Shown here piece by piece: positions 9,815-50,367 of a stretch of DNA of 64,000 bases (positions within the stretch are counted from its first letter, which is position 1; each line of letters begins with the position of its first letter). The translations under genes were made by a program, and so were the position numbers. The notes under the pieces are model-generated. The model was not told the DNA's origin and searched no databases. It worked only from the letters and a program-made list of their open reading frames with translations. The stretch is taken from positions 124,001 to 188,000 of IMG/VR virus record IMGVR_UViG_3300035145_003993; one strand, written 5' to 3'.

Positions 9815-10990
9815 TCAGTATGAATATAAATATAACTTATCTTTGATCTTTTGTTGATTATCATGTGCTTGTTTTCTACTTAATCCTTTTTTAATACTTT
9901 CAGACATGATTCTTTGTGAATCTACAATATCTTCCATTAATTTACAATGACTTTCAGCATAATCTGTGATAAGATTAATATTTTTAATTACGTATTCTAA
10001 CCTTTTAATAGTAAAACATACAATATGAGCCGCATCTTTAAAAATAATTCTTTCTGAGGATGAGTGTGAAATATCTCTTTCAAGAAGTGTTGTACAGTTT
10101 TCAATTGCTGTTTGAAAATAAGATTTATATAACCTTGTAAGACCACAAATATTTTCTGTTAAGATAGGATTTTTTTTATGTGGCATTGCACTTGATCCTT
10201 TTTGCTTGGCTCTAAAAGGTTCAGCCATTTCATTTATTCCATCTAAACTGTAAATTCTTATATCATAAGAGATTTTTTCAATTGCAAGTACGAGCTGTAG
10301 TATGCCGTAAAAATAATCTAAGTAATGTTGTCTTGGAATAATTTGTGATGAAATAACAGGTTTAAGATCAAGTTGTTCTAAAGCTTTATGTTCACATTCA
10401 ACTGTATTAAAATAGTAATTCCCGGTAGCACCACTAAGTTTTCCTAAGCTTATTTTATCTTTAGATTCAAGTACTGAGTCATATCCTTTTCTCAAAAGAT
10501 GCAGCCAACGATATATTATATCATAATAAGTTTGTATTTCTGCAGCTTTTCCATGTGTTCTAGCAAGTATTCTGTTTTTCGATTCATCAGATTGTAACAG
10601 ATTTGACAAATGAAATATTAAACTACTTGCATAATCTAACACCACTTGTAGACTTTCTTTACACATTATTGATAAAGATGTATCAAGTATATCTGAAGAC
10701 GTTAAACCGTAATGAATCCATCTACCACTCTTGTCTGGAATAGACTCTTCTAACATTTGGACAAATGCTTGGACGTCATGATTAGTTTCTTCTTCTATTT
10801 CTTTCCAACGATTAATATTGATTTTAGCATTTTCTTTAATTACGTTGAATTCATCAGATGTAATTGTTGGATGAGTTATATTGTCTAATTGAGATTCAAG
10901 ATGAGCTAATTCTACTTTTAGCCAAGTGTTTAATTTATTTTCTGTTTTCCAAATATCATAAATTTCTTGAACTTTATATCTTGGTATCAT
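9815..10990 (-). CDS. purB: Adenylosuccinate lyase
   Basis: HYGLTSSDI, RTHGKAA, and the GSSAMPHKKNPILTENICGL signature. Confidence 0.93.
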   Translation of the reverse strand: MIPRYKVQEIYDIWKTENKLNTWLKVELAHLESQLDNITHPTITSDEFNVIKENAKININRWKEIEEETNHDVQAFVQMLEESIPDKSGRWIHYGLTSSDILDTSLSIMCKESLQVVLDYASSLIFHLSNLLQSDESKNRILARTHGKAAEIQTYYDIIYRWLHLLRKGYDSVLESKDKISLGKLSGATGNYYFNTVECEHKALEQLDLKPVISSQIIPRQHYLDYFYGILQLVLAIEKISYDIRIYSLDGINEMAEPFRAKQKGSSAMPHKKNPILTENICGLTRLYKSYFQTAIENCTTLLERDISHSSSERIIFKDAAHIVCFTIKRLEYVIKNINLITDYAESHCKLMEDIVDSQRIMSESIKKGLSRKQAHDNQQKIKDKLYLYSY

Positions 10991-11187
10991 TTTTCCTCTT
11001 TCGTTATTTTTTCTAGAAAGTCTGTAGGGATTTGTACTATTTCTTTATTTAATAAGATTTTAGATAGCGTTTTGCTTTCTTGATAAGAAGAATTTTTTCC
11101 ATAAGATATAAAAATCCCAACATCACATCTACTGTTTGAAAACTTATTTGTATTAAGAACAAGATCACCTTTAGTTAAGATGCCCAA
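10987..11187 (-). CDS. Small SH3/KOW-like protein
   Basis: LTKGDLV...DVGIFISY; sits between purA and purB. Confidence 0.55.
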   Translation of the reverse strand: MGILTKGDLVLNTNKFSNSRCDVGIFISYGKNSSYQESKTLSKILLNKEIVQIPTDFLEKITKEEK

Positions 11188-12371
11188 ACTATTTCTCCTC
11201 TTTTAGGACCAGTTGTAAAAGATATACGTTTTACACCAGTGTGGATTTCTATTGTATTTAATAATTCTTTAAATCCAGGATCAGTTGTTTTAACGCTGTT
11301 AATTCTAGTCATCGAATAGTTTCTTCCGTGTAAGAAGAAAGCAGGTTTCTCTATATGTGTCATCACGTCTGTTTTAACAACACACAAATGATCTACTCCA
11401 TTTTGTATAATAGCTAATTTAACTTCGTCTAAATCTAACCAACCACACTGTCTAGGACGCCCAGTTGTCGCACCAAACTCTTGACCAACTTCAGCTAATA
11501 TCTTTTCTTGACCATCTGTAATGATACTAGGAAAATTACCGCTACCTACCTTAGTTTTGTAAGATTTAATTACTCCTATTACTTCATCGATTTGCTTATG
11601 ATTTAATCCTGTAGAGTTGATTGCTCCACCTACAGAAGGTGAAGATGATGTAACGTCTGGATAGTTATCTGAAAATATGTTAAGGCCACTTCCTTGTGCA
11701 CCTTCTAAAAGAATATTATAATCTTTTTTATAATATTCGTGAAGAACATTTTCGTCACTTAGTTGATACATTCGCAAGATTGAAACCATATTTTCATATT
11801 CAGAAATCCAAGAATTAAATAGATCAAAGTCAGGTTTTAAGTCTTCTAAACTTTCACCGTCTTGTGCTCTTCTTTCTTGTAAGTCATAAAACCTTGATTG
11901 AATTTTAATGAGAGACTGTTCAGGCATATTTACAAAATCTTTAACCAAAATAGAGTCCCGAGCGTAAAAATCAGAGTATGCAGGACCAATTCCTTTTGCA
12001 GTCGTGCCTAGTCTTTTCTGATATTTGAGTCGATCAATTATTTTATGAGTTGGCTCAATTATAGGACAATATCCCGAAACTGAAAGATTTGAACCAGGTT
12101 TTACATTTAAGTCTGTTACTTCTTTGCAAAAGTCTTCTACATCTATAACACATCCTCTTGAAATAATGTTAATAACTTCTTTTGTTAAAACACCTACAGG
12201 AAGAATGTGTGTAACAAACTTATTACCTTTTCTATCGTAAACTGTATGACCAGCATTCCCTCCTCCTTGAAACCTTACAACGACGTCAGCCCAAGTTTGA
12301 ACTAAATCATCAACTACTCTACCTTTACCTTCGTCTCCATGTTGAAGACCTAAAACTAATTTTACTGGCAT
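11175..12371 (-). CDS. purA: Adenylosuccinate synthetase (canonical PurA, not PurZ)
   Basis: QHGDEGKG, RFQGGGNAGHT, GTTAKGIGPAY, LEGAQG, EFGATTGRPRQCGWLD. Confidence 0.93.
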   Translation of the reverse strand: MPVKLVLGLQHGDEGKGRVVDDLVQTWADVVVRFQGGGNAGHTVYDRKGNKFVTHILPVGVLTKEVINIISRGCVIDVEDFCKEVTDLNVKPGSNLSVSGYCPIIEPTHKIIDRLKYQKRLGTTAKGIGPAYSDFYARDSILVKDFVNMPEQSLIKIQSRFYDLQERRAQDGESLEDLKPDFDLFNSWISEYENMVSILRMYQLSDENVLHEYYKKDYNILLEGAQGSGLNIFSDNYPDVTSSSPSVGGAINSTGLNHKQIDEVIGVIKSYKTKVGSGNFPSIITDGQEKILAEVGQEFGATTGRPRQCGWLDLDEVKLAIIQNGVDHLCVVKTDVMTHIEKPAFFLHGRNYSMTRINSVKTTDPGFKELLNTIEIHTGVKRISFTTGPKRGEIVWAS

Positions 12372-12374
12372 AAT

Positions 12375-13436
12375 TTACTTTCTATTAAAAATATGTGGAT
12401 TACCTTCGATATGTGATGAAGAGCTTTGAACTCTAAAAACTGCATTTTCTCTAAGGTCATTTAAATTTTGAGCTCCGCTGTAAGACATTCCACTTTTAAC
12501 GTTTGACATAATTTCATTTAAAACTTCTTTAACAGATCCTTTAAAAGGTACATAAGAAGAAACGCCTTCAACTGAATTATATGTTCCTTTCCAGTCTTTT
12601 TGCGCTGCTTTAGAAGCCATACCATTATACTTTTTTGTTTTTTCACCTTCTTCGTTAAGAATCACTTCACCAGGTGTTTCTTCAGTTCCACTAAGAATAG
12701 AACCTAACATGACGAAATCTGCACCAGCGGCTAATGATTTAACAATATCACCACTATTTTTAATACCACCATCAGCAATAATATAAGAAGTTTTTTGATC
12801 TAATTTTTGTAACTCTAATTTAGCTTTGTAGCAATCAAGAACAGCTTGAAATGTTGGTATTCCGTGACCTGTTTGGATTCTAGTAGTACAAATACTACCA
12901 CTTCCGACCGAAGATCTTATTGCGTGAGCTCCAGCTTGAGTTAATCTTTTATATGCATGACCTGTTGCAATATTACCAGCAATTACAAACAAATGATCAT
13001 ATTCACTTCTGATAAACTCGATAGCATTTTCCATAAGTACATGATCACCATGTGCAATATCAATACAGACAATATTTAAATCATTTTTTACTAATTCAGA
13101 TAATCTTTCTTTATAATCTCCTGATGCTCCTATCGCTGCTGATTTGTAAAGATTATTATTTACTTTTGATAAAAGATTTACTTGATGATCTATAGAATTA
13201 TACCGATGTATAATTCCTAATCCACCTTGATCTATCATAGCATTAGACATATCATATTCTGTTACTGTAGACATAGGCGAACTAATAATTGGTATATTAA
13301 ACACTAAATCTTTTTTATTTTTATTTGTTGATACTTTAACAGATGTATCTATATTTTTCCTTGTTTTAAGGTTAGAATATTGTGGTTCTAAAATTACATC
13401 ATCAAAACTTAAAACTTTTTTATTTATAACTTTCAT
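12375..13436 (-). CDS. IMPDH/GMP reductase family enzyme without CBS domains; GMP reductase favoured
   Basis: [37 protein letters not shown]; no Arg-Tyr flap dyad. Confidence 0.85.
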
Positions 13437-20262: not shown

Positions 20263-22017
20263 TTATTCTCCACAGGGTTGAATGATGCAAGAAGCATCAG
20301 GTAAATTTGAGTTGAGAACTTCTTCACAAGAATTACCTATTTTAAGATCTGGTGCCCAACTCCAGTTATTCATAATTATATATCCCGCATGTATAGGAAA
20401 ACCATTTAAATCGTAAGAAACTATTTCAGATAATTTTATATATCTACTAGTTTGTCTGTGAAACATTCCAAACCTTCCTCTAGGAATATATCCACTATAA
20501 CTAAATGTTGTTGATGAAGTATTTGAATTTACAATGGTTTGAGAAATACTTTCACTATTCCCTACAGAAACAACCTTTCCACTTGATATACTTTCTGACA
20601 TGTTCCATACACGTCCAGAAGATAATGAATTTGATTCTGAAAGGGTGTTCGAAGTATTATTTGATAAAATATATGAACCACTTAAAGAATGACTTCTAAC
20701 ATCATTTTGAACACTTCCAAATGTTTTTCCACTTTGATTAGATCCACTAGTTGAATATCCTCTAGAAGAAGAGTTAGACTCACTTTCAGAAGAAGAATTA
20801 GAATTACCCCATCCTTGAGAAACTCCAGCAGAAACTTCAACTTTCCCACTTGCTTTTGCTAAAAATGGTAAAGATCCTTCTCCACTTACACCGACTGTTG
20901 TTGATCCATTAACAGAAGTATTAGAGTTATTAGATTGACTTTGACTAGAAGATTCAGAATTAGATTCTCCTAAAGACCAAGACCAAGATTCTCCGTCTGT
21001 AGTATTAAAAGAAATATTATTACTTTCACCGCTAGATTCTGAATTGGTGAATGATTCACTTTGTGTTTCTGATTGAGATAATGAAGATGACAATACTGTA
21101 TTTTGAGTTTCACTTACACTAACACCTTCAGATATACTAGAAGAAGTATTAGAAGTAAAGCTATCACTCCAGTTTTTATTTATTGTAATTGAAACACTAT
21201 TTTGTTTAGTTTCTGATTGTGACTCTGAATAGTTTACTGTGTTACCAACAGATCCAGGTATACATCCAGTTACAGGAACAGGTTCATATGTTTCTGCTAA
21301 TTCATATTTTCCATAATGTTTAACTTCAATAGGATTAACTACTTTAATTGGTATAGCATTTTCTATATATTCATTATTGTCATTATAGGCAGTAATTCTT
21401 ATTAGAGCTATGTAAGATGAAATATCTTTAGGTACTTCTAAAAAAACATGTTCGATATAATCATTAGAGACAGCGGAACTAAATTCATTTGTATAACTTA
21501 AACTAGTATAAGGACTTGTTATATCATAATGTAATTTAATAGGAGAAAACTTAAAAGAATCAACATTAATATAAGTCTTAACTCCACCTAAAACATTTCC
21601 AGAAAGTGAATTACAATTTTCTTGATTACAAATTCCGCTAATAATAATAGATTTTTCTATATTTATCGGCAAACTTACAATAATTCTTTCATCTGATTCA
21701 AATGATAATTTATATCGTTTATAGAAAGGTATTTTTTTATTTAAAAATCTTTTTAATATTAATTTATCATTTAAAAGAAGAGGAGAATATTTTTCAATAA
21801 CATTATTATTACTGTCTTTTAGTTTTATTGTTTTTATGATTTTATTATTTTCTTTATTTTGTAAAGAATATTTTATTACTTCTCCTGATGTAATACTATT
21901 TTTTCCTATAATTTTTTCTTCTTTATCATAAGAAGATTGTGCACAGGAAGTAAAAAATAAATAAAAGATAAAGTAAAAAATTAATCTATTCATTTTCATG
22001 TGTATTTCTAAATTCAT
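20263..22017 (-). CDS. Lipoprotein with giant Ser/Thr-rich beta-hairpin, aerolysin/ETX-MTX2-like
   Basis: Lipobox FTS-C (likely start MNRLIF); 250-aa alternating S/T region centred on VGVSGEGSLPFLAKASGKVEVSAGVS. Confidence 0.65.
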   Translation of the reverse strand: MNLEIHMKMNRLIFYFIFYLFFTSCAQSSYDKEEKIIGKNSITSGEVIKYSLQNKENNKIIKTIKLKDSNNNVIEKYSPLLLNDKLILKRFLNKKIPFYKRYKLSFESDERIIVSLPINIEKSIIISGICNQENCNSLSGNVLGGVKTYINVDSFKFSPIKLHYDITSPYTSLSYTNEFSSAVSNDYIEHVFLEVPKDISSYIALIRITAYNDNNEYIENAIPIKVVNPIEVKHYGKYELAETYEPVPVTGCIPGSVGNTVNYSESQSETKQNSVSITINKNWSDSFTSNTSSSISEGVSVSETQNTVLSSSLSQSETQSESFTNSESSGESNNISFNTTDGESWSWSLGESNSESSSQSQSNNSNTSVNGSTTVGVSGEGSLPFLAKASGKVEVSAGVSQGWGNSNSSSESESNSSSRGYSTSGSNQSGKTFGSVQNDVRSHSLSGSYILSNNTSNTLSESNSLSSGRVWNMSESISSGKVVSVGNSESISQTIVNSNTSSTTFSYSGYIPRGRFGMFHRQTSRYIKLSEIVSYDLNGFPIHAGYIIMNNWSWAPDLKIGNSCEEVLNSNLPDASCIIQPCGE

Positions 22018-22638: not shown

Positions 22639-22891
22639 TTTTTCTCTTCATTAATTCAATAACTGACTCCTGAAACTGGGGAGACTTAGCAATATTAAAT
22701 ATGTCTTCACTAGAGTGTTCCATTCCGTATTTTTTCGAAATGTTTGCTGCAATTTTAACAAAAGACCTATTAATTATATTTCTAACTGTTGAATGGTTCA
22801 TTTTATGACCACACTTTGTCATAATATTTGCAATATCGTATAAACCTAGACCTTCTTCATTTTTAACTGTTACATATTTTTTATTTTTCAA
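22616..22891 (-). CDS. HTH protein resembling detached sigma region 4.2
   Basis: [11 protein letters not shown]...[17 protein letters not shown]; TTG start overlaps the sigma stop by 11 nt. Confidence 0.65.
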
Positions 22892-23633
22892 GATATTTTC
22901 TCATTTCTTTAGTCACAGGAAAGTTTTTAATATTATTGTCGTTATTGTTAATTCCAAATCTAAGTCTAATTATTTTTTCTTCTTTAGGAGTTAATAAAGA
23001 TAAACTTTCTTCAACAATTTGATTTAGTTCTTTATGTTCTAAAGATTTTTCAGGATTCGAAAATATTGACTCATCTTCTATTTTATTTAAAACACTGAAT
23101 GTATTCGAATCACTATCTTCTCTTTCAATAGAAGAAATATTTTTATTTGACTTTAATGTGTATTTAACTTTTTTAGATGGTTCATCAACTAATTCAGATA
23201 TTTCTTCTATTGAAGGATTTCTTCCATTTTCTTCTTCAAATTTTAAAATTTCTTTTTTAATTTTAGAATTTAATAACCTTGAGTGAGTAGGAACTTTTAT
23301 ATTTGAAGATTTTTCATTTATATATTGTAATGCTGATTGTTTTATCCACCAGCAAGCGTATGTGCTAAATTTGTAACCTAACTCAGGATCAAATTTGTCA
23401 ACAGCTTTAAGAAGTCCTATTGTACTTTCTTGAATAAGATCATCAAAATCTAAACCATTTCTATGATATTTTTTTGCAATTGAAATAACTAATCGATAAT
23501 TTGACTCAATTAGCTTTTTTCTTGCTTTTTCATCACCTTTTTTAATTCTTCTTGATAATTCAATTTCCTCTTTTTTCTTTAATAAGGGATTTTCTTTAAT
23601 AACTTTAGAGAAACTAGAGTGAATATTAACCAT
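22881..23633 (-). CDS. Sigma-70 family factor (regions 1.2-4.1), lacking the region 4.2 HTH
   Basis: [55 protein letters not shown], then stop after 21 residues. Confidence 0.9.
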
Positions 23634-23672
23634 TAATTGTCCTTTAATTATATAGGTTTTTTGTTAATTATA

Positions 23673-23873
23673 CTATATATCAATTATAATTACACGCGAT
23701 TTTTCTTTTTCTTTTAATCTTTCATTAGGTACACGATCATAGTCGTATGGATTAGGAATTTCAATTCTTAACATTCTATCATTTTCATCATAGAAATTTT
23801 CTTTTTGTTTTTCATAAATAGATTTTTTAATTAAAAGGTCATCTATAATACTGATTTCAATTTTAGAATTCAT
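23673..23873 (-). CDS. Small hypothetical protein
   Basis: RMLRIEIP...SRVIIIDI. Confidence 0.55.
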   Translation of the reverse strand: MNSKIEISIIDDLLIKKSIYEKQKENFYDENDRMLRIEIPNPYDYDRVPNERLKEKEKSRVIIIDI

Positions 23874-23896
23874 AATTTTCCTTTCATGACTCTATA

Positions 23897-25528
23897 TTAA
23901 TACATATCATCTGATAGTTGAACTAATTGAACTCCTCCATGACCGTCATTACTATTTAAAACAATACACCCTACTGATATTAGACTATTACATACACTAA
24001 CTGCGTTTGATATTGCAGTTGCAGTAACTTTTTGTGGATCAATAATTCCTTCATCAATCATATCAACATACGATTCAGTACGAACATCATATCCATAATT
24101 CCAATCTCTATTGTTTTTTATCATTTCAATAATATAATCAACTGGTTTATCTCCATTTTGCAAAATCTTTTTCAATGGAGACATACATGCGTCAGAAACA
24201 ATTTTTGAAACAGTGCTATCTAGCAAGGATTCTTCTTTGCTTTCTTCTAAAAGATTTATTCCTGCTCTTGCCAAAGCAATCCCACCACCTGGCAAGAATC
24301 CACTTTCAATAGCAGCTTTCGTTGCATGAAGAGCATCATCGATTCTATCTACTAATTCTAATAACTCAGATTCTGTATGAGCTCCAATTGAAAGAACAGC
24401 AACAATACCTTTATTAATAATAAGCCTTTGTTTATAAAAGACTTCATCTTCCTTTGAAAGAGTTTTATCTTCTAATTTTTTCTCAACAGCCTTCGAAATT
24501 TCATCAGAGTTTTCACAAGAAGCACATTCAACAAAAAGAGTTGAATTATGATTTGTTTCGATCTTTTTAGAATTCCCTAAGTCTGAAAGGAGAACATTAG
24601 ACATTTCTCTTTCATCTAAATCATAGAAAACTTTTGTTCCTAAAGCTTTAGCGAGATCATTTAAAATTTGATTTCTTTTTTCACCATAAAATGGAGATCT
24701 AACTGCACAAACTTGCAAAGTACCTTTTGAAACATTAGCTAACAAAGATTGAATTACTTCTTGTTCATAGTCATTTGCAATAATAAATAAAGATTTTCCA
24801 GTTTGATGTATTTTTTCTAAAATCGGAAGAATTTGTGAAAGACTATTTAATTTACAACTTAGGATTAAAATTAAAGGATCATCTAAAACTGTTTTTGATT
24901 TTTCATTGTCATTAATAAAATAAGGTGAAACATATCCACGATCAATTTTAACACCACGAACTAATTTAAGCTCTGTATTTGTAGTTTTAGATTTTTCGAC
25001 TGTAACTAGTCCAGAAGAACCTACTTCTGACATTGCGTTAGCAATCAAGTTACCAATATATTCGTCACCGTTAGCACTAATTGTTGCAACTTGCCTTATT
25101 TCTTCATTAGAAGAAACTTTCTTTGATTTTTTAGATAATATTTCAACAACATCAGAAACCTTTTTATTTAAGTAAGAAGTGATTTCTGATGGTGATCCTA
25201 TTCCTGTTTGCAAAGCTTGAGATGCTCTAAAATATAATTCTTTAGCTAAAACAGTTGAAGTTGTACTTCCATCACCCGCTACAGTTGCTGTATTTTCGCT
25301 AGCTTGTTTTAAAAGTTTTGCGCCAAGATCTTCAACTCTATTTTGTAGAACAATACTTTTAGCTACTGTTGCACCATCTTTAGTTAAATGAGGAGGTTCG
25401 TTATTTTTTTCTATTAATACTAATTTACCTCTTGGTCCCATTGTGATTGAAACAGCATCACAAAGTTTTTTTACTCCACTTTTTAGATGATTTTGTGCTT
25501 CTTCATCAAAGTATATTAAGTCTGACAT
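23897..25528 (-). CDS. groEL: Chaperonin GroEL
   Basis: ITMGPRG, TKDGATVAK, AGDGSTT, RIDDALHATKAAIESGFLPGGG, GIIDP. Confidence 0.95.
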   Translation of the reverse strand: MSDLIYFDEEAQNHLKSGVKKLCDAVSITMGPRGKLVLIEKNNEPPHLTKDGATVAKSIVLQNRVEDLGAKLLKQASENTATVAGDGSTTSTVLAKELYFRASQALQTGIGSPSEITSYLNKKVSDVVEILSKKSKKVSSNEEIRQVATISANGDEYIGNLIANAMSEVGSSGLVTVEKSKTTNTELKLVRGVKIDRGYVSPYFINDNEKSKTVLDDPLILILSCKLNSLSQILPILEKIHQTGKSLFIIANDYEQEVIQSLLANVSKGTLQVCAVRSPFYGEKRNQILNDLAKALGTKVFYDLDEREMSNVLLSDLGNSKKIETNHNSTLFVECASCENSDEISKAVEKKLEDKTLSKEDEVFYKQRLIINKGIVAVLSIGAHTESELLELVDRIDDALHATKAAIESGFLPGGGIALARAGINLLEESKEESLLDSTVSKIVSDACMSPLKKILQNGDKPVDYIIEMIKNNRDWNYGYDVRTESYVDMIDEGIIDPQKVTATAISNAVSVCNSLISVGCIVLNSNDGHGGVQLVQLSDDMY

Positions 25529-27411: not shown

Positions 27412-29835
27412 TTATAATTTCATTTTTTTAATTTTATCATCTATTGTATTTTTGACCTGGACTCTTTTGATACTGTCTTTTAAATAATTATCTTTTATAA
27501 CACTGTTATTTTTAAAAACATATTCATTAAAATCTTGAAGCATTTTTTTCGTTTCAGAAAATGACGAATTATTAATTTCTTTTAATTTTTTCCCGTATTC
27601 TGATTTTTGAAAATCTTTTGGATCATAATCTATATCAAATAAATTTGTGTCTGATAGATATTTTAATCCGTCGATTTTTTCTAAATCTTCATATCTTTTA
27701 TCAAGTTCGTCATTTAAATTATTATATTTTTGTTCTGTCATTTTTTTATTATCATCATATAATTTAAGAACATTTTGATATTCTTTTGAAAATAAAGACT
27801 GAAAGTATTCAATCACTTTAATATACGTTTCAGCAATTTCTTTTTGAATAAAACCTTCAATATTAGATATTTCATCGTCGTCAGTACTTAAAATTTCGTT
27901 AATAAAGTCTTCGTTATTTTCTAATTCATTTATTTTCATAAAATTTGTATTTAACCAATTAAATATAGCAATATATTTTTCTTGATAACTCATTTCAAAA
28001 AATTTAAGACTAAAAATAATTCTATCAGTAATTATCTTCTCTAATTCTTGAAGATAATTGCTATTCTCTATTGAGTCTTTAAAAGTTTTATATGAACTTT
28101 CATTTTTAAAGTCTTCAAAATTGTGATCAATATTTTTTTTAAATAAATTTTTATCTTTACTCTTAATTTTAATATCATCTAATAATAAATTATAATATTG
28201 TTTTATATACGAATCAGAATCTTCTTGTATACTTTTTTTAATATTACTAATTTCTTCTTGTTTTAATTTATCGTCAGAATTTTTTAAATCGTCTATTTTT
28301 TCTTCGAAATTTTTTAATTCTTTTTTATATATATCTTTTTCGTCAATAAATATTTGATCAGTTAGATAGTCATTTATGTAACCTTTGAGATCATTATCTT
28401 TGATGTAATTTAAAAAACCTCCAATGTTATCTTGAATTTTATTTTGAATTAGTTCATTAAAAGTTTTATCTTGAATTTTATTTACTTTTTTAAAATCTGT
28501 ATTAGAAACAAGGCTTTTGTCTACACCATAATCAAGATTATATTCATTAACAGCTTTTACTAAAAGTAAGTCAATTATAATGCAAGAAGCAAGTCTATAT
28601 TGATCTTTATAATATTTATTTATTTTATCTAAATCTTCATCAGATTTTTCTATTTCAAAAGTTTTATTATTTAAATCTTTTTTTTCTGATTCAGAACTGT
28701 TTTCAATCTTATCTCCTAGATCATTAAATTTTTTATTAGTTTTTTCGTTTTTATTAACTTGTTTTAAAGATTCTGTTTTAAAGTCAAATTTCCCATCATT
28801 GATAATCTTTTGAATTTCTTCATTTTCTAAAAGAACTGCTACAGCTATAGAATTGGATAATTCTAGAATTAAAGAAGCAAATTTATCAATTTCAAAATCA
28901 TTACCAATATTTTCTTTTAATATAATATTTTTATTATTAATTTGCAAAACTTTTTTTAATCTATATGAAGACTCGTTCTTTTTTGTGTCAACTAAAGAAG
29001 TTTTTTTTATCGATTTTAAATAACTTTTAAGTTTCTCTAAGAATTTTTTTGATGTTTTGTTTTTTATAATGTTATAAGAAGTATAAGTTCGATTTTCTAA
29101 TACTTTTTTTATTAAATTGAAAGTTTCTTTGTCTTTTTTCTTAAGAACCTCGTTGTTCATAATATCAAAAAATTCTGGGTGAGCTTTTTTACTTAAAAAT
29201 AAATTTAATTTAGGTTTAAGTTTATTAACTTTTTGTATGTTTTTTCTTAAAAGTTGATCAATAATAGTTTTTGTAGGTGATTCTATTTTATTATCTTCAT
29301 TAGATATAAGTTCAATTTCATAAATCATCCAAAAGATTATAAGTTGATACATATCATGGTCAATATTATTGTATTTTGCATATAAATTTTTATTATACAA
29401 TTTCCCAGTTAAAAGATCAGATAAATTAATTTTGTCAAATATTGTTACACCTGGAACACTTAAAGCAAAAGTAGATAATTCTGAATTTGATATTCCTGCT
29501 TTGTTTAACATAGACTTTGTTGTATTGTCTATATTAGATATTGTTCTATCACTTGAATCAACAAAACTTACTCTTGCGTCTTTTAATGCTCTTTTAAAAT
29601 CTTCATCTGACATGTTTTTTAATATTTTTGCTCTAAAGGTAAGCCATCCAGATTTTATTGTGAATTTTGCTAATTGTGATAAAAACTTAGAACTATCACC
29701 CATAAATGAACTAACATCTCCAACAACGTCGGTTGTTATACCTTTTAATAATTCCTTATCAGAGCTGTCTTCTAAAATAATTTTTTTATTAAAAATCTTT
29801 AATACTTTATTTTTCATAGTGTTTATCTTCTTCAT
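27412..29835 (-). CDS. Large hypothetical protein (807 aa), possible virion/internal protein
   Basis: Long ORF; amphipathic N-terminal segment; helical K/E/N-rich body. Confidence 0.7.
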   Translation of the reverse strand: MKKINTMKNKVLKIFNKKIILEDSSDKELLKGITTDVVGDVSSFMGDSSKFLSQLAKFTIKSGWLTFRAKILKNMSDEDFKRALKDARVSFVDSSDRTISNIDNTTKSMLNKAGISNSELSTFALSVPGVTIFDKINLSDLLTGKLYNKNLYAKYNNIDHDMYQLIIFWMIYEIELISNEDNKIESPTKTIIDQLLRKNIQKVNKLKPKLNLFLSKKAHPEFFDIMNNEVLKKKDKETFNLIKKVLENRTYTSYNIIKNKTSKKFLEKLKSYLKSIKKTSLVDTKKNESSYRLKKVLQINNKNIILKENIGNDFEIDKFASLILELSNSIAVAVLLENEEIQKIINDGKFDFKTESLKQVNKNEKTNKKFNDLGDKIENSSESEKKDLNNKTFEIEKSDEDLDKINKYYKDQYRLASCIIIDLLLVKAVNEYNLDYGVDKSLVSNTDFKKVNKIQDKTFNELIQNKIQDNIGGFLNYIKDNDLKGYINDYLTDQIFIDEKDIYKKELKNFEEKIDDLKNSDDKLKQEEISNIKKSIQEDSDSYIKQYYNLLLDDIKIKSKDKNLFKKNIDHNFEDFKNESSYKTFKDSIENSNYLQELEKIITDRIIFSLKFFEMSYQEKYIAIFNWLNTNFMKINELENNEDFINEILSTDDDEISNIEGFIQKEIAETYIKVIEYFQSLFSKEYQNVLKLYDDNKKMTEQKYNNLNDELDKRYEDLEKIDGLKYLSDTNLFDIDYDPKDFQKSEYGKKLKEINNSSFSETKKMLQDFNEYVFKNNSVIKDNYLKDSIKRVQVKNTIDDKIKKMKL

Positions 29836-32639: not shown

Positions 32640-35600
32640 TTACTTTGTCTTTTTTCTAGACTTTCTAGTTTTAGGCAACTTAATAGTTTCTAAACCAAAC
32701 TCAGAATCTAAATAATCTGCAAAGTCTTTTCCAATTAATAAACTTCCATATAATTCTTTGTAATTTTCAAGAGCTTCCTTTGAATCTTTACCAATTTTAT
32801 CAAATACTTTTGGAATTAATACATCGAAATCTGTTCTATTTTTAAATTCTGATGATGCAAATGCTTTAATAATTGATTCATCAATATCACTATCAGACAT
32901 AGAATAAATGTGATTTATTAATTCATCTGCTGTTGTTTTAGTTAATATTTTTAGATCTTCATATACTGATCCAATGATTCCATTTGGACTAAACATATCA
33001 TCTAATAATTTTTCAACGTCTTTTCTATTAAATTCGCCACCAAAAAAACTTTTAAGCTGATCATCTTCATCCCTATTAGAATTTAATTTTTCTACTTTAC
33101 CTATAAGATATCCTTTTCCTGGATTTAAAAAATAATCTCTTTGACTATCTCTTGTACTTTTTGCAGATGATTTTGATATCCCTTTAGATCCGGAAGATCC
33201 TAGTCCCGATAGTTTTTGAACTACATTAGCAATTGAAACAAAAATATTTTGTCCTTCATCTTTTTTGATTTGCTCAATTCTTGGACTAGATGGACTTAAT
33301 CCTGGTGCAAGAATATCTTTTCCATAATGAGTATCAAAATATTCTTTAGTTGCTTTAATAATACTATTTTTTGTTCTTCCTTGGATTTTTTTCTTATAGA
33401 AATTATCAAGTAAACCTATAACATATAAAGAAAAACCTGATTGATTTCCAAGAGAAGCTTCAAGAACTAAGTAAGAAGAAAAACCTTTATCATTTTTCGA
33501 TAAATCCTTTAGTAATTCATTATAACTAGCTTCATCATCATCTGATAGTATTTTAATAGAATTTATTTTTTCTGAAATTTCTTGTGCGACAGAATCATCT
33601 CTAGCTTCATCAAAATATCTTTGGAGTAATTTAGTATCTGTTAATATTTTACTAATTTCTGAAAAGTAATCTGAAACGTCTTCTAGTTTCTTTGATCTTT
33701 TGTATTTTCCTTGTAATTCTAATTGTTTTAATTGTGAAGAAGAAATAGCCACATCTGCTTCGTCTTCGTTTTTAGAAGGAACTCTTACGAATGATTTATC
33801 ATCAATCAAATCAAGCTTAACCAAACGTTCAGTCCATCTATCTGCTGCTGCAGAATATATTCGAGCTTTTTCATCTGGATTACATGAATAAAACAACTCT
33901 TGAGACCAAGCCTTTTGAGCTAATTGTCTAACACCTGCTCCACTTGCAAACTGGCCATAGGACATATGAGAAATATCAACGTCAGTAAGGTTTTCTTTTT
34001 TATCAAGACCAAACTTAGAAACATGTTCTTGTGTCTTTTTAATTACATCATCTATAGATGCATAATTGTCATATAAGTCTCTATAGAACTTTCTTTTTTT
34101 ATCTACATTAATAATATTAATTTTATCTTTGTATGATAGTCTTTCTAGAATTTCTTTAATTTCATTTTCTTCTTCTTCACTCAAATCTTCAGCAGGAATA
34201 GTGTCTGGTATATTAATAATATTACCAAATTCATCTTCTTCGATTGGATTAAAAATATCTGGATTAACTCTTTCTGTAGATTTCTTATATAAATCATTTA
34301 AACGTTTAATATCATCAGAAATTTGTTTCATATATTTCTGAAGTTCGAAAACAGTTAATGATAAATTTCTATTTTTACTAGAATAATCTTCTAATTCTTT
34401 TGTAACATTAATTTCTTCTTCAATATAAAAATTGTCATCTTGATCAGGATCATCAGATATTCTTTTATCAAATTCAATATTTTGCTGTTTAAGCTTTTCT
34501 AATTCATCGTCAGATAATCTAGGTTCTAAATCAAAATCAGCAGTATATTCTTGATTTAAAGGGTACATAATATCTAATTCTTGTTTGAGTTCTTGAATAC
34601 TTTTATTTCTAGAAGAACCAGATCTAGACCATAGTCTTAATAGTACTTGTTCTCTAATTAAATCACTTTCTAAGTCAAAGTCGCCTCTAGATAATTCTTC
34701 TTTAACATCTACAATAATTGATCTTATTTCTTCACTAGACAAACTTTTTCCAAGACCGACACTTCTTCTAAAACTCGAAACAGCGTTTTTAAGATTTAAT
34801 TTTTGCGCTTTGTCTAGGGAAGAAATCATTCTGTCTTTTTCTGAATCACTAATTCCTAACATCATATTAGACTGAGATTCGAGTGTTAAATAAACTTCTA
34901 TTGACATTATTATCCAAAGTTTTCTTTTTGCTAATAGAGATAAATCATTTTCTTGACTAACACCCGAATTTTTGAGCTTATTTGAAACATAAACAACTAA
35001 TTGATCCCAAGGTTGTAATACAGCAGACTTTTGACCGGCAACATATTTACCTGTTCCCGTAAAACCTAAAGCTTTTGCTATTTTGTTATTTGAAGGACCT
35101 TTTGAAAATCTTTTTTGTTCTTTAGATTTAACTTTTTTATAAATAGATTCAACAGGTTGTGATAAACTAGGTGCTGGTTTTAAATCACTATCAGGCAAAT
35201 CATCTAAATCTATTTCTGAAAAGTCTTCTTCGTCTTTTTTCTGTTGAACGCTATCTAAATCTTCAGATCCAAATTCATCGTCTAATTGTTGTTGAATCAT
35301 TTCTAGTTCTTCTTGAGAAGGACCCTCAATATTATCTAAACTTCTTCTTCTTCTTCTTGAAGTTCTTGATTCTAATAAATCAATTTTATCTTCTATTGAT
35401 TTAATTAATATATTCTCTAGTTTTAAATCTAATTCTTTGTTAACATAGTTAACTTTATCTAATTCTTCGTTAATTAAAGAGTCAAAGTCTCTAATACTTT
35501 TTGAATATTTTAAATCAATAGATTCTTTTATTTCTTTAATAAAATCATTCGTGATATTATTTTTCAAAAATTCAAAAATATATTTTTCATTTGGAAGATC

Positions 35601-35774
35601 TCCATTAGTTAAATTTAAAGATCTAACTAAACATTTGAATTCTTCAAAAAGAACTTTATTTTTATTTAAATCACTCTCGCTTAATCTTGAAAGAGCATAA
35701 AACTTTCTTTGATAATCTTTGTTTTTAAAAGAAAGAAGTTTATTAACTCTATATTTTAGTTTGTTATTCGTCAT
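32640..35774 (-). CDS. Large hypothetical protein (1044 aa)
   Basis: Long ORF; acidic blocks, SRRRRRS run and basic tail. Confidence 0.75.
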   Translation of the reverse strand: MTNNKLKYRVNKLLSFKNKDYQRKFYALSRLSESDLNKNKVLFEEFKCLVRSLNLTNGDLPNEKYIFEFLKNNITNDFIKEIKESIDLKYSKSIRDFDSLINEELDKVNYVNKELDLKLENILIKSIEDKIDLLESRTSRRRRRSLDNIEGPSQEELEMIQQQLDDEFGSEDLDSVQQKKDEEDFSEIDLDDLPDSDLKPAPSLSQPVESIYKKVKSKEQKRFSKGPSNNKIAKALGFTGTGKYVAGQKSAVLQPWDQLVVYVSNKLKNSGVSQENDLSLLAKRKLWIIMSIEVYLTLESQSNMMLGISDSEKDRMISSLDKAQKLNLKNAVSSFRRSVGLGKSLSSEEIRSIIVDVKEELSRGDFDLESDLIREQVLLRLWSRSGSSRNKSIQELKQELDIMYPLNQEYTADFDLEPRLSDDELEKLKQQNIEFDKRISDDPDQDDNFYIEEEINVTKELEDYSSKNRNLSLTVFELQKYMKQISDDIKRLNDLYKKSTERVNPDIFNPIEEDEFGNIINIPDTIPAEDLSEEEENEIKEILERLSYKDKINIINVDKKRKFYRDLYDNYASIDDVIKKTQEHVSKFGLDKKENLTDVDISHMSYGQFASGAGVRQLAQKAWSQELFYSCNPDEKARIYSAAADRWTERLVKLDLIDDKSFVRVPSKNEDEADVAISSSQLKQLELQGKYKRSKKLEDVSDYFSEISKILTDTKLLQRYFDEARDDSVAQEISEKINSIKILSDDDEASYNELLKDLSKNDKGFSSYLVLEASLGNQSGFSLYVIGLLDNFYKKKIQGRTKNSIIKATKEYFDTHYGKDILAPGLSPSSPRIEQIKKDEGQNIFVSIANVVQKLSGLGSSGSKGISKSSAKSTRDSQRDYFLNPGKGYLIGKVEKLNSNRDEDDQLKSFFGGEFNRKDVEKLLDDMFSPNGIIGSVYEDLKILTKTTADELINHIYSMSDSDIDESIIKAFASSEFKNRTDFDVLIPKVFDKIGKDSKEALENYKELYGSLLIGKDFADYLDSEFGLETIKLPKTRKSRKKTK

Positions 35775-37557: not shown

Positions 37558-38280
37558 TTACAATATTTGTGATATTTTATCTGCTTTTTTAATTCTATCT
37601 TCAATAACTGACCATTTAAGTTCTTTCATCATTGCGAATACATACATTTTTCTATTTTTTAAATAGTCCCTATAATAACTGTGTTCCCAACAATCCATTA
37701 CAATAACTGGTATCATTCCAATCATTACATTTAAACTATGTAAATCTATAATAGTATTAACATATCTTTTAAGATATATGTCATAATAAGTAACTGCCCA
37801 ACCATTTCTAGCTGAAAGACAACATGCAATAAAATCTTCTTGCCACGCATCAAAACTTCCAAAGTCTCTAGCAAGCCTCATATAGCTTAATGAATTCATA
37901 GTAATATTACTATTTAAATCAGAAATATTTTCAAAATATAATCCATGAAGAAATGCTGCATTGTGATTATATGTTTCGTCTACTTTTAAGCTTCTAAATG
38001 ATGAATGATTTAAATTAGCTAAAGATTTATCAACGCCATCAAGATTAGCAGAAATTTCATTTAATTGTTTAGCATAACCTTCTAATAATTCTTGATGAGA
38101 TTTTTTAGTTTTTGAAGATAAAAGTTCAGTCTGTAAATCAAACTTTCCTGCTTCAATAACATAAGCCTCTGATAGAAGACTTTTTGGATTACTTGTTTCT
38201 TTCTTATTGTTTTTATTCAATCCATTTTCGCTCAAAGATGAATCTACAGCTTCTTTAATAATTTTATCTAAATTTTTCAT
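37558..38280 (-). CDS. Fe/Mn superoxide dismutase-like protein with N-terminal leader
   Basis: SHQELLEGY, FLHGLYF, DFGSFDAW, GWAV and DCWEHSYY metal-ligand motifs. Confidence 0.8.
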   Translation of the reverse strand: MKNLDKIIKEAVDSSLSENGLNKNNKKETSNPKSLLSEAYVIEAGKFDLQTELLSSKTKKSHQELLEGYAKQLNEISANLDGVDKSLANLNHSSFRSLKVDETYNHNAAFLHGLYFENISDLNSNITMNSLSYMRLARDFGSFDAWQEDFIACCLSARNGWAVTYYDIYLKRYVNTIIDLHSLNVMIGMIPVIVMDCWEHSYYRDYLKNRKMYVFAMMKELKWSVIEDRIKKADKISQIL

Positions 38281-43155: not shown

Positions 43156-43365
43156 ATGTACCAAATTTTAGAAAATTATATACAACTTGTATTTGAAAAC
43201 GAAAAAAATAAAAACAAAACGTTTAAAGATATACTTAATAGTTTAAAAAATAGTCAAAATCCTAAAAAGGTACTAAGAAATACAGATCCTATAGAAAGAA
43301 ATACAGATCAAATAGGATTTGACCAATTAATTAAAAAATCTAGTAATTCTAATCAAACGCGTTAA
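43156..43365 (+). CDS. Short leader-bearing ORF, possible remnant
   Basis: MYQILENYIQLVFENE; RBS present; overlaps the dnaE stop. Confidence 0.45.
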   Translation: MYQILENYIQLVFENEKNKNKTFKDILNSLKNSQNPKKVLRNTDPIERNTDQIGFDQLIKKSSNSNQTR

Positions 43366-46300
43366 TCTTTTTAAGCTTAGCTAAACTTGATGACATACCC
43401 CAGTTAACATCATTACTAATATCAGCCAACCAAGTTGTAAATTCAATTTCACCTTCCATATCTCCCCATACTCGAAGCCATCCACTTCGATTATCAATAT
43501 CGACGCATTTCCATCTCATAAATGATTTACCGTTTTTAGTTGTTTTTCTAATAACTTCTGTAACAGTAAACCATCCAATTCCACGCTCACCTTTTGGTAT
43601 ATCAAAAATACTATTGATTTGCTTCTGTTTTAGTTTTTTAACTAAGCTTGGTGGAAACAATAAATCGTCATTTGCATCATTACTGAGTTCAAAATAGTTT
43701 TTAATTTTAGTACTTCTTGACCAATCACTAACAACTCTGTATTGTGAGATTAACTTTTCGACAATTGGAATGATTTCTTCACCATTTTTATTTGCTTTTT
43801 TAATAGCAGTTTTTGTCATTCCAAAGCTTCCTTTCTTTAAAATCATATAATTATCCAAGATTAAATCATGCATTTGTTTGTGATTGTCTAGTGTTCCATC
43901 TTGAAATTCTTGGAGTGACTTAAATGCTTCCATCTTTGTTAGTGATGAAAAAGCTGTTTTATTCATTTTTGAATGTTTCCATTCTCCTTCTTTATTGTAA
44001 AAAAGATCTTGTAAATTATTATATGGTCTATTTACAAATATTTCTTCAACAGCTTTGTCACCTACTCCTTTAAGAGATGTCAACGGAGGAACAAACGATT
44101 TTAAATCTTCTGAATATTCCCATTGAGATCCTGAGTGATTTATATCAATTGCTGATATGTCATATCCTAGTGCCTTAATTTCTGCAATTACTTTGGACAT
44201 TCCTTTAGGATTACCATTTTCTGATTGTAAAACAGTTGCTAGCCAGTCTGTTTCGTAGTGTGTATGAAGCCACGCAGCGTAATATGAGTCGATTGCATAA
44301 GAAACAGCATGACTTTTATTGAAACCGTAAACAGCAAAACCTTCTATTTCTTCCCAAAGTTTTTTAGATATATGTTCGGGTACATCATTAATTTCTTTTG
44401 CACCTTTAATAAACTTTTCTCTTGCAATTGTTTTTTCATCTTTTTTATTTCCCATTGTTGCGAGATTATTCTTAACAAGGGTTTTTCTCAGCTTATCAGC
44501 TTCACCTGGATCAAAACCTGATAGTTTTTGTGCAAGTAACATAAATTGCTCTTGAAATACAACGTAAGAAAATGTTGGTCCTAAAACTTCTTCGATAATC
44601 GGATGATCGTATTTAATTTGTTCTGCGTTTTGTTTAGATTTAACATATTTTTTATGAACATTAGCTTTAAGAGGTCCAGGACGATAAATAGCAGTTAAAG
44701 CTGCTAATTCTTCAATACTTTCTGGTTTAGCTTCTAATGAAAAGTTTCTAGCTCCTGTATTTGTAAATTGGAATATTCCTACAAATCTTCCATCATGATA
44801 TACATGCTTCCAGACATCTTGATCATTTTGTTCGTGAAATCTACAATTTAAATGTTTATCAAAGAATTTTTTAGCATCACTAAATTGTGGATTATTATTA
44901 CCCTCCTTTTTAAGGATTCTATAAATACAATTTTCAATATCTTTTAATAAGGATAAACCTAAGAAATCAAATTTAATAAAACCATTATCTTCTAAGTTTC
45001 TAAAATTTAATCCTTCTGACCATGGTGTTTGTAATTCTCCTCTTACACCTACGATAGGCATAGTTGTTTCTAAATGTTCAGGATCAGCTACTAACACACC
45101 CCCTGCATGACGACCAATTGCTCTATTCTGCATAAACAAAGAAGCAATATGAGTTTCAACTTCAGGATATCTTTCCATAAAATCTTTATATTCTGGAGAA
45201 TACTTTTTACAATCTTCATGCTTAAGAACAAAAACAGATTTTTCTTGATCGTCACCTTTTGCCATTTTCATAACTTGATCGTGAAGAGGACCAGTTACTT
45301 TATTTACTTCATCATACGGAATATCATAAAACTTAGATATATCTTTAATAAGAGACTTAAGCTTTAAAGTATTAAAGTTAGAAACAGGAATAACAGCATC
45401 GTTTCCATATAATTCTTTTGCAGCATTAATTAACTCATCACGATCACCAGCATCTGTATCAATATCAGGCCATGAAACCCTATGCCTTCCTAAGAATCTT
45501 GCCCAAAGAAGATCGTATGGAAGAGGGTCAACTTGTGTAATGCCTAATAAATAATTAACTAAAGAGCCAGCTCCTGATCCTCTTCCTGGCCCTAATAAAG
45601 TTTTCTTTTCAGCCTTCTTAAAAATTTCATACATCGTAATAAAATATGCTTCGTGACCAAGATACTTTATATCTGATAATTCTTCTTTAGCACGATCAAC
45701 ATAAACTTGGTTTGTATGAAAACCATGGCTAACGAGTGAATCTTTAACTAAAGAAGATAAGTGTTGAAAAGGAGTTTTATTTGGAACGTTTATTGTAGGT
45801 AGTTTAACTCCTGTATCAATCCAAGTATCTTCAAATTCATTCCAAACGATATCATGAGTTCGATTAATAGCATCACGAACTAATTCTTCATTACCTTTAT
45901 AAAATTCATAAGTAGGATATGAATCAAGAAATTCTTCCCACATTTGAGAAGCATTTTTTGGATATAATTCACACTTAAGATCTTCAAATTCTGGAAGAGA
46001 AAGATTATCTCTTTTTCCTAACCAACCAAGTTTTTTATATAATTCTCGAGCTTGCCATTTTTCATTTGAAGGGTAATGTGAATCTGCTGTACAAATAAGA
46101 GGAATACCTGTTAATTTATGGTGTTCTATAAGATAATCATTAACAGTATGCTGTTTTTCTAATTTATTAAACTGTAATTCAAGTTTAAAATTGTTTTCTC
46201 CAACACAAGAAACAAACCTATCTGTTAGATTTAATAATTCTTTCTGAATTTGTTCACGTGATTGATTATGAACTTCACCTCTTAAAATACGATTACTATA

Positions 46301-46444
46301 AATACCACCAAGGCAGTTGTGCACTAAAATATTGTTAGCAAAAAAATTGTGATTACCTTCAACAGTAATGTCGTAAACGTCAGAAGTCTCATCTATTTCT
46401 TCAATAATTTCAACTTCAATAAATTTTGTTTGAATGTCTTTCAA
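43349..46444 (-). CDS. dnaE: DNA polymerase III alpha, C-terminal part, preceded by a C-intein
   Basis: IntC ending VHN|C; GPGRGSGAGS, PDIDTD, GRHAGG, KFDFLG, YGFNKSHA. Confidence 0.95.
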   Translation of the reverse strand: MKDIQTKFIEVEIIEEIDETSDVYDITVEGNHNFFANNILVHNCLGGIYSNRILRGEVHNQSREQIQKELLNLTDRFVSCVGENNFKLELQFNKLEKQHTVNDYLIEHHKLTGIPLICTADSHYPSNEKWQARELYKKLGWLGKRDNLSLPEFEDLKCELYPKNASQMWEEFLDSYPTYEFYKGNEELVRDAINRTHDIVWNEFEDTWIDTGVKLPTINVPNKTPFQHLSSLVKDSLVSHGFHTNQVYVDRAKEELSDIKYLGHEAYFITMYEIFKKAEKKTLLGPGRGSGAGSLVNYLLGITQVDPLPYDLLWARFLGRHRVSWPDIDTDAGDRDELINAAKELYGNDAVIPVSNFNTLKLKSLIKDISKFYDIPYDEVNKVTGPLHDQVMKMAKGDDQEKSVFVLKHEDCKKYSPEYKDFMERYPEVETHIASLFMQNRAIGRHAGGVLVADPEHLETTMPIVGVRGELQTPWSEGLNFRNLEDNGFIKFDFLGLSLLKDIENCIYRILKKEGNNNPQFSDAKKFFDKHLNCRFHEQNDQDVWKHVYHDGRFVGIFQFTNTGARNFSLEAKPESIEELAALTAIYRPGPLKANVHKKYVKSKQNAEQIKYDHPIIEEVLGPTFSYVVFQEQFMLLAQKLSGFDPGEADKLRKTLVKNNLATMGNKKDEKTIAREKFIKGAKEINDVPEHISKKLWEEIEGFAVYGFNKSHAVSYAIDSYYAAWLHTHYETDWLATVLQSENGNPKGMSKVIAEIKALGYDISAIDINHSGSQWEYSEDLKSFVPPLTSLKGVGDKAVEEIFVNRPYNNLQDLFYNKEGEWKHSKMNKTAFSSLTKMEAFKSLQEFQDGTLDNHKQMHDLILDNYMILKKGSFGMTKTAIKKANKNGEEIIPIVEKLISQYRVVSDWSRSTKIKNYFELSNDANDDLLFPPSLVKKLKQKQINSIFDIPKGERGIGWFTVTEVIRKTTKNGKSFMRWKCVDIDNRSGWLRVWGDMEGEIEFTTWLADISNDVNWGMSSSLAKLKKINAFD
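46316..46444 (-). mobile_element. Split intein C-fragment (43 aa) of DnaE
   Basis: VYDITVEGNHNFFANNILVHN followed by Cys+1. Confidence 0.93.
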
Positions 46445-46463: not shown

Positions 46464-46492
46464 AATATAATACAATTAGTTAATATTTACAC
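46464..46492 (-). promoter_or_regulatory. Phage promoter GTGTAAA-N16-TATATT for the dnaE C-fragment
   Basis: -35 lies in the last codons of the endonuclease gene. Confidence 0.65.
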
Positions 46493-50136: not shown

Positions 50137-50367
50137 CTAAGTCTCAGATTTAGTTACCCACAGACCGTCTTGATTTTCTAAATCCATTGTTTCTCTAGAC
50201 GATCCATTTAAGTAAACAATTAGACCTTTAACAAAGTAATGATCTTGAATAATTTCTGTAACTAAACAGTTATTTTTTATCCTTTCACCATAAAAAAATA
50301 TATCAATCATGTCACCTTCTTTTAACTGTGATACTTCGTGTATTTCATTTTTATAATTACTGGACAT
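50137..50367 (-). CDS. Small SH3/KOW-like protein
   Basis: LKEGDMIDIF...CLVTEI. Confidence 0.6.
   Translation of the reverse strand: MSSNYKNEIHEVSQLKEGDMIDIFFYGERIKNNCLVTEIIQDHYFVKGLIVYLNGSSRETMDLENQDGLWVTKSET

Follow-up and report, generated by a model that had tools for sequence, protein, structure and literature searches.

The membrane-insertion hairpins of known aerolysin-type proteins have Ser/Thr-rich flanks (PMC4179158), and in the aerolysin core, the hairpin is placed between the second and the third strand (PMC3110756). The lysenin pore has a hairpin of 74 residues, a lumen lined by Ser and Thr (12 Thr and 9 Ser), and a membrane belt of 35 Å (PMC4823867). Among phage lipoproteins, the unimolecular spanin (u-spanin) of phage T1 (gp11 type) has a mostly β periplasmic domain and is thought to connect both membranes; a periplasmic Cys was found in 0 of 58 u-spanins (PMC6139136). 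Here, we describe a gene of a marine jumbo phage whose product combines a lipobox with a 250-residue Ser/Thr-rich tract. The gene lies on the minus strand of a 64,000-nucleotide stretch, hereafter the window, which covers positions 124,001 to 188,000 of IMG/VR virus record IMGVR_UViG_3300035145_003993. An earlier note, made from the DNA letters alone, had described the tract as a giant symmetric hairpin in a lipoprotein and as a possible very long aerolysin-like pore or conduit. In our analysis, the hairpin held up well, and the pore is a tentative reading that has to be weighed against several alternatives.

Register and conservation of the Ser/Thr-rich tract

Positions 20494 to 21243 of the window (minus strand) translate into residues 259 to 508 of a 584-amino-acid open reading frame (ORF). 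The alternating, Ser/Thr-rich character reported for these 250 residues was confirmed: they comprise 82 Ser, 22 Thr, 29 Asn, and 20 Gly (Ser plus Thr, 42%), and small residues (G/A/S/T) occupy 96 of 124 even versus 30 of 123 odd positions (Fisher P = 2.6e-17). This bias was found in the ascending arm (residues 262 to 378; 47 of 59 even and 12 of 58 odd positions) and in the descending arm (residues 390 to 508; 48 of 60 even and 14 of 59 odd positions) alike. Across 127 sequences of the family, the fraction of small residues was 0.78 at even versus 0.28 at odd positions, and hydrophobic residues were nearly confined to odd positions (0.33 versus 0.06). Along neither arm did the phase of this dyad flip, and it faded nowhere but at the tip. 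The parity is shared by the two arms, as is required if residues i and j pair with i + j being even.

Between the arms lies an amphipathic tip, GEGSLPFLAKASGK (residues 379 to 392; nucleotides 20842 to 20883), with 120 residues on one side and 116 on the other. It stands at relative position 0.494 of the insert, close to the middle, as had been claimed. Within residues 375 to 385 and 387 to 403, the odd face is made of Val, Leu, Phe, Ala, and Trp, and the even face carries Glu and Lys close to the turn and is otherwise Ser, Thr, and Gly. The tip region (residues 375 to 403) thus alternates between hydrophobic and polar residues, and its flanks contain 42% Ser plus Thr, the combination expected of a pore-former hairpin. 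When the tract is laid out as a hairpin, one face would be almost purely Ser/Thr/Gly, the opposite face would be a mixture of acidic, amide, and hydrophobic residues, and the last 12 to 16 residues of each strand at the tip would be hydrophobic on the mixed face. The tract contains a single Pro, at the tip, compared to 11 in residues 26 to 258. Two further patterns were observed. The hydrophobic conserved positions on the large-residue face of residues 263 to 377 recur about every 12 residues, a borderline signal (power of 0.99 versus a 95% null of 0.98) that is weaker on the descending arm, and the ascending arm carries recurring Gly-Glu-Ser-like motifs.

The tract is better conserved than the folded N-terminal domains. 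In a 30-sequence alignment with 29 relatives at 52 to 75% identity, it is ungapped over 260 columns, and the mean column entropy was 0.99 bits for the ascending arm, 0.33 bits for the tip, and 0.77 bits for the descending arm, compared to 2.2 and 1.34 bits for the two Ig-like domains. The tip has the lowest entropy in the whole protein. At the DNA level, no tandem repeat other than one of 16 nucleotides was detected under the tract.

Relatives with inserts of other lengths were informative on how the two arms are related. In 30 of 46 relatives, the most hydrophobic 6-mer of the central 60% of the insert fell at 0.47 to 0.53 of its length, versus about 10% by chance (P = 2e-19), and the position of this 6-mer followed insert length with a slope of 0.49 (r = 0.999; lengths of 75 to 317). 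Indels of closer relatives were paired, one per arm, with equal or nearly equal sizes, similar distances from the tip, and lengths in multiples of two. For example, pairs of −4/−4 and of −16/−14 lie some 30 residues away from the tip and a pair of +2/+2 some 75 residues away, these placements being uncertain by a few residues since the gaps fall in Ser-rich sequence. We also calculated covariation as average-product-corrected mutual information among 127 ungapped sequences. The top two antidiagonals overall were i + j = 768 and i + j = 770, with means of 0.022 and 0.020 relative to a background of −0.0006 (standard deviation, 0.056 over about 130 pairs). Most of the highest-scoring single pairs reflect phylogeny; the average along an antidiagonal is the sole informative quantity. 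In the AlphaFold2 (AF2) model of the window protein, the base strands of the insert span residues 260 to 273 and 497 to 510, and both ends sum to 770. This numbering is compatible with the 770 antidiagonal, along which the two strands may pair. No single register stood out in the mirror correlation of hydrophobicity along the tract, and profile autocorrelation gave no sign of an internal repeat to which the length classes described below could be ascribed.

Since the alternation is unbroken and equal in parity between the arms, the tip keeps its central place, the indels are mirrored, and covariation peaks at 768 and 770, the insert very probably forms one continuous two-stranded antiparallel β-hairpin of about 126 residues per arm. 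These are also the lines of evidence on which the giant symmetric hairpin with an amphipathic tip, as first described, can be accepted. A single hairpin of this size would be the longest known by far, about three times longer than those of known pore-forming proteins.

The lipoprotein family and its length classes

As read from its sequence, the gene product is an exported, lipid-anchored protein with two Ig-like domains followed by a β-rich head module that is split by the 250-residue insert (Table 1). A lipobox-like FTSC closes the N-terminal signal peptide at residue 25, and Cys25 is invariant among the 30 aligned relatives. Lipobox-like matches were present in 100 of 114 full-length members of the phage family and in 91 of 119 distant relatives; in 95 of the 100 matches, the residue after the lipobox Cys is A/S/C/T, and in none is it Asp. 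The protein thus has the hallmark of a lipoprotein, a signal peptide closing in a lipobox with an invariant Cys, and the lipobox of the earlier note stands. Translation may in fact begin at an internal Met, a few codons further downstream. Besides the lipid-anchored residue, six Cys are invariant in the alignment, and these fit an exported protein. The flanks that had been pointed out were recovered as well, with PVTGCIPG (residues 248 to 255, including the invariant Cys252) upstream of the tract and a conserved C-terminal domain (residues 509 to 584), in which R521 and Q522 are invariant across the 30 sequences, downstream of it. The C terminus itself is polar and Cys rich and contains no hydrophobic stretch or transmembrane segment. 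AF2 modeled residues 35 to 235 as two β-sandwich domains, mostly with a predicted local distance difference test (pLDDT) score of 80 to 95, and residues 505 to 580 with moderate scores.

A search among 5.8 billion proteins yielded 263 relatives at an E value of ≤1e-3, which establishes that the gene is real; the closest 120 are 52 to 96% identical to the window protein, and most are 564 to 588 residues long. A profile search of 1.84 billion representatives identified 271 relatives. The distant ones, which were anchored by hidden Markov models and loose anchors, keep the N- and C-side head segments and differ in the length of the insert. Anchor-to-anchor lengths were 74 to 85, 118 to 123, 160 to 169, 189, 219 to 229, 240 to 261, 268, 271 to 279, and 316 to 323 residues, and 133 of 178 anchored sequences have an insert of identical length. 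In the shortest relatives, the insert carries an amphipathic hairpin of about 50 residues flanked by Ser/Thr, the size of that in an ordinary pore former.

The family ranges from marine IMG/VR jumbo-phage contigs to genomes of Myxococcota and Bradymonadia and carries no annotation. Over the gene and 3 kb on either side, the window is 100% identical to IMG/VR contig UViG_3300035145_003993 (211,364 bp), and twenty further IMG/VR contigs encode the family. A scan of GTDB species genomes with one peptide pattern, by which other taxa may be missed, returned 40 loci; the named taxa were all Myxococcota, Bradymonadia, or metagenome-assembled genomes labeled "Deltaproteobacteria" or delta proteobacterium, and a few loci were labeled only "bacterium" or "proteobacterium." The Myxococcota loci belong to Myxococcales, Haliangium, Polyangiaceae, Nannocystaceae, and Polyangiales. 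The window protein shares 39% identity with a Myxococcales protein along 461 residues, a span that takes in the whole hairpin. The phage has a single copy of the gene, and two Myxococcota-type genomes have tandem paralogue pairs (L004, 6127 to 9890; L027, 5005 to 8929), each pair being 47% identical and all four proteins having the long hairpin. In bacteria with such pairs, a two-component assembly is possible. The family connects widespread marine jumbo phages, in which the gene is unannotated, with predatory bacteria of the Myxococcota and Bradymonadia and their lipoproteins. This link suggests a mode of action on the Gram-negative envelope that has so far not been described.

Likeness to known proteins and possible assemblies

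In Pfam, neither aerolysin nor ETX_MTX2 matched the window protein at an E value of ≤10 or ten relatives at ≤0.1. Searches of PDB with phmmer and with profiles gave nothing significant. The sole PDB match of the family profile was to zebrafish natterin-like Dln1 (4zno), a protein with an aerolysin fold. The hairpin regions of both proteins were aligned, and the rest was not; the match is nonsignificant (E = 0.092; 14 bits) and is driven by the common alternating Ser/Thr/Val pattern. A tblastn search of 50,697 phage records returned no match, and literature searches directed at a protein or a phage lineage of this kind turned up no description; the contig could not be linked to the published "moraphage" jumbo phage either. 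Weak matches to NF033849, an NCBIfam model named "serine-rich protein," were obtained with the hairpins of phage and bacterial members (the window tract, P0288, P0285, and P0273; E = 2.8e-12 to 3.3e-5). The scores fall far short of the cutoff, and these matches may be compositional or may reflect another family of the same build.

One short relative, P0227 (430 residues; insert of 75), was modeled by AF2 from a 45-sequence alignment with a pLDDT of 82.7. The long strands predicted for its head module span residues 272 to 285, 302 to 322, 354 to 383, and 389 to 409, and a low-confidence hairpin lies between the second and the third. This predicted order is compatible with that of the aerolysin core (PMC3110756). 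Foldseek comparison with aerolysin-type structures, proposed as a check of the original idea, did not favor it: whole models of the window protein and P0227, used as queries against PDB and BFVD, gave results dominated by the Ig-like domains, and the top 50 for either contained no aerolysin-family entry. A virion fiber role, suggested by BFVD matches to tail proteins, was rejected on the grounds that these matches rest on Ig/FN3 domains and that the protein has a lipobox.

By analogy, the logic of the hairpin is best read as that of an aerolysin-type pore former. Shared with lysenin, ETX/MTX2-type toxins, and parasporin-2 are an amphipathic alternating insertion hairpin with Ser/Thr-rich flanking strands and attached accessory domains of a binding type; going by the P0227 model, the hairpin may likewise interrupt a long-strand sheet between the second and third strands. 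The short relatives' hairpin also comes near that of lysenin in size. The phage protein differs from these secreted soluble toxins in being a lipoprotein, in lacking a detectable sequence or Foldseek match to them, and in the length of its hairpin, which at about 250 residues is about 3.4 times that of lysenin. Moreover, a tube this long cannot enter the membrane that bears its own head. Of the aerolysin likeness first proposed, the analogy can be kept on the strength of the short relatives' hairpin and the nonsignificant alignment with 4zno; membership in the family cannot, as there is no Pfam, PDB, or Foldseek match. Among phage lipoproteins, T5 Llp and the Cor proteins are examples of small single-domain receptor blockers that prevent superinfection. 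The phage protein resembles them in having a lipobox, in being destined for the host envelope, and in being encoded outside a lysis cassette; however, nothing like the long hairpin is present in them, and the phage protein showed no similarity to any cultured-phage record.

A two-stranded ribbon of such length lacks a core of its own and would therefore most likely pack laterally against further copies in a barrel. As in aerolysin-type β-pore formers, several subunits would assemble next to each other, and their hairpins would form one long β-barrel with the Ser/Thr face lining the lumen, as in lysenin, and the hydrophobic tip buried in a bilayer. At about 2.7 Å per residue, the rise in the lysenin pore (74-residue hairpin; about 35 Å of membrane plus about 65 Å above it), 126 residues per arm would extend to about 34 nm; the calculated length of an untilted ribbon is about 42 nm. 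With the lipid anchor fixing the head to one membrane, the tip would have to enter another roughly a periplasm's width away, the periplasm being 20 to 30 nm wide. In a Gram-negative infected host, an outer-membrane-anchored tube would reach the inner membrane. We put the oligomeric barrel with a membrane-inserted tip, which is argued from analogy, at slightly under an even chance. If it is correct, a pore-former design has been extended from a 10-nm stem to an envelope-spanning tube; to our knowledge, no pore-forming protein that crosses a whole periplasm has been described. Permeabilization, bridging, or exclusion at the envelope are possible roles in the phage, and any one specific role, including the lysis, DNA passage, or contact killing named in the earlier note, is doubtful.

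A broader proposal is that the family builds oligomeric β-barrel tubes and that the hairpin encoded in each gene determines how long they are, inserts of about 75, 120, 162, 225, 268, and 320 residues giving tubes of about 10 to 40 nm (roughly 21 nm for the 162-residue class). The 268-residue class, found in marine jumbo phages and predatory Myxococcota, would then form a tube of about 34 nm that is lipid anchored in one membrane and has its tip in another, crossing the periplasm of the producer itself or of its prey. Such barrels would constitute a natural series of length-graded protein nanotubes. This proposal as a whole is speculative and clearly less probable than the barrel alone.

Several results weigh against the barrel and, in part, against the hairpin. 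The AF2 monomer leaves residues 266 to 504 at a pLDDT of about 24 without secondary structure; Foldseek with both whole models returned only folds of the tandem Ig/FN3 type in the top 50 (Ig/FN3/arrestin-like for P0227 against PDB); and the protein, its immediate neighbors, and its relatives had no significant match in Pfam, NCBIfam, PHROG, PADLOC, or PDB sequences. The covariation signal is weak, with an effective number of sequences of 44, though it appears in the expected place. About one-third of the putative outer face is hydrophobic, which is unusual for a barrel surface in water. Furthermore, the gene resides among replication and nucleotide-metabolism genes and not beside lysis genes, and the bacterial relatives are chromosomal, one tandem pair adjoining mreB-mreC-PBP2-rodA.

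That last context is as compatible with a structural role in the envelope as with a pore. The strongest rival accepts the same hairpin; all that sets it apart is the function given to the assembly. Alone or in a narrow closed bundle, the hairpin would be a rigid strut or tether, a spacer of fixed length between the lipid-anchored head and a second membrane or the cell wall, with the tip as an anchor or a closed hydrophobic cap. The uniform length and ungapped alignment of the family, the discrete length classes of the relatives, and a chromosomal setting in bacteria without toxin-immunity-like context, next to mreB-mreC-PBP2-rodA in one case, are what a spacer would lead one to expect, and the hydrophobic patches of the large-residue face could be its core. 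However, the short relatives resemble ordinary membrane-insertion hairpins, polar/nonpolar alternation with charged turn residues at the tip is typical of pore-former hairpins, and the near-pure Ser/Thr/Gly face matches the Ser/Thr-rich lining of the lysenin lumen (PMC4823867). We consider a strut unlikely, albeit the alternative to be taken most seriously. A lysis function has less in its favor. In this case, the protein would be an outer-membrane lipoprotein that reaches the inner membrane with its hairpin tip instead of a C-terminal transmembrane helix and helps to disrupt the envelope at the end of infection, as suggested by the lipobox with no Asp after the Cys, by a predicted length on the order of the periplasm, and by the T1 u-spanin, likewise a phage-encoded lipoprotein with a mainly β periplasmic part (PMC6139136). 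Yet the six invariant periplasmic Cys contrast with their absence from all 58 u-spanins (PMC6139136), no C-terminal transmembrane segment is present, the gene lies about 37 kb from the only endolysin-like ORF, and close homologues occur in bacterial chromosomes outside any evident prophage. A spanin-like lysis protein is thus improbable, and identity with a unimolecular spanin proper, which would call for a C-terminal transmembrane helix, no conserved Cys, and a place in the lysis cassette, was rejected.

The two other alternatives deny the hairpin itself. If the tract were a compact β-rich domain (a meander, sandwich, or solenoid), its central hydrophobic segment would be part of a core, and the borderline recurrence of about 12 residues on one arm, the Gly-Glu-Ser-like motifs of the ascending arm, and the partly hydrophobic outer face could be accounted for. 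A dyad register kept for about 120 residues per arm without a phase shift or a proline, a tip at the midpoint at any length, indels mirrored about that tip, and the absence of a detectable internal repeat all speak against such a fold, and AF2, which handles compact β domains well, found none; we rate it a little below even the lysis protein. A disordered serine-rich linker or glycosylated stalk, like the low-complexity regions of serine-rich adhesins, is what the low pLDDT and the coil would suggest at face value, together with weak compositional matches to the serine-rich protein and Clf/Sdr adhesin models. The earlier note had named a model with a disordered linker as grounds for giving up its idea, and the AF2 monomer literally shows one; nevertheless, the low-confidence coil is not taken as a refutation because the comparative evidence contradicts a linker. 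The family has no indels in the tract and conserves it above the folded domains, the period-2 pattern is strict and the mirrored indels keep to it, the tip is nearly invariant, no DNA repeat underlies the tract, and the NF033849 score is 44.8 versus a cutoff of 650 bits. A linker is thus very improbable indeed, and the case illustrates that monomer structure prediction can overlook strict order in a serine-rich stretch of low pLDDT.

Genomic surroundings of the gene

The window corresponds to the region of a large phage genome that is devoted to replication and nucleotide metabolism. The neighbors of the gene are small ORFs without a family match, a sigma factor, GroEL, and an SNase-type nuclease, and the immediate neighbors have neither a family match nor a transmembrane segment. 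The order of exonuclease, GroEL, sigma factor, small ORFs, and target gene is conserved in related marine contigs. The only endolysin-like ORF of the window is located at positions 58724 to 59506. The closest counterparts of the phage GroEL come from phages of Flavobacterium (40% identity) and of Bacteroides (37%), a weak hint from sequence likeness that the host might belong to Bacteroidota.

Table 1. Parts of the lipoprotein gene and other annotated features of the window
Feature	Positions	Strand	Basis
Whole gene, 584-residue lipoprotein precursor, stop codon included	20263..22017	-	ORF list; homologues of very constant length, n = 263
Signal peptide up to lipobox Cys25	21943..22017	-	Translation; invariant Cys25; family lipobox matches
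Ig-like β-sandwich domain 1 (about residues 35-120), most variable part	21658..21915	-	AF2 strands, pLDDT 60-91; Foldseek tandem Ig/FN3; mean column entropy 2.2 bits
Ig-like β-sandwich domain 2 (about residues 121-235), invariant Cys130 and Cys135	21313..21657	-	AF2 pLDDT 80-95; invariant columns
Head module, N side, residues 236-258, PVTGCIPG with invariant Cys252	21244..21312	-	Alignment; retained in all distant relatives
Predicted hairpin, ascending arm, residues 259-378	20884..21243	-	Ungapped; dyad pattern; no proline
Amphipathic tip, residues 379-392, sole Pro of tract; hydrophobic face about 375-403	20842..20883	-	Translation; lowest entropy
Predicted hairpin, descending arm, residues 393-508	20494..20841	-	Dyad parity equal to that of ascending arm; indels mirror other arm
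Head module, C side, residues 509-584, invariant Cys564, Cys577, and Cys582	20266..20493	-	Alignment; AF2 strands, pLDDT 55-81; conserved in all distant relatives
Sigma-70 family factor and GroEL, just upstream of target gene	22881-25528	-	
PurB (adenylosuccinate lyase), PurA-like synthase, and GMP reductase/IMP dehydrogenase-like enzyme, adjacent	9815-13436	-	
Two large ORFs, 807 and 1044 residues, no match in Pfam, PHROGs, or NCBIfam	27412-29835; 32640-35774	-	
Fe/Mn superoxide dismutase C-terminal domain protein; von Willebrand A domain protein	37558-38280; 50357-51538	-	
DnaE-type DNA polymerase III alpha, main piece	43349-46444	-	
HNH/homing-endonuclease ORF between the two DnaE pieces	46476-47426	-	
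DnaE-type DNA polymerase III alpha, N-terminal piece	47464-48381	-	
Ribonucleotide reductase small subunit	61867-62832		
Ribonucleotide reductase large-subunit ORF	62866-63927	-	Matches only positions 488-795 of 975-position PHROG profile

Besides the features in Table 1, the window encodes an ATP-dependent ligase, a helicase-like ATPase, a thymidylate synthase-like protein, and a 5′-3′ exonuclease. The gene for the large subunit of ribonucleotide reductase may be split or may continue beyond the window. PurZ-type base modification was considered for the purine genes and rejected, as the PurA-like enzyme scores better as PurA than as PurZ.

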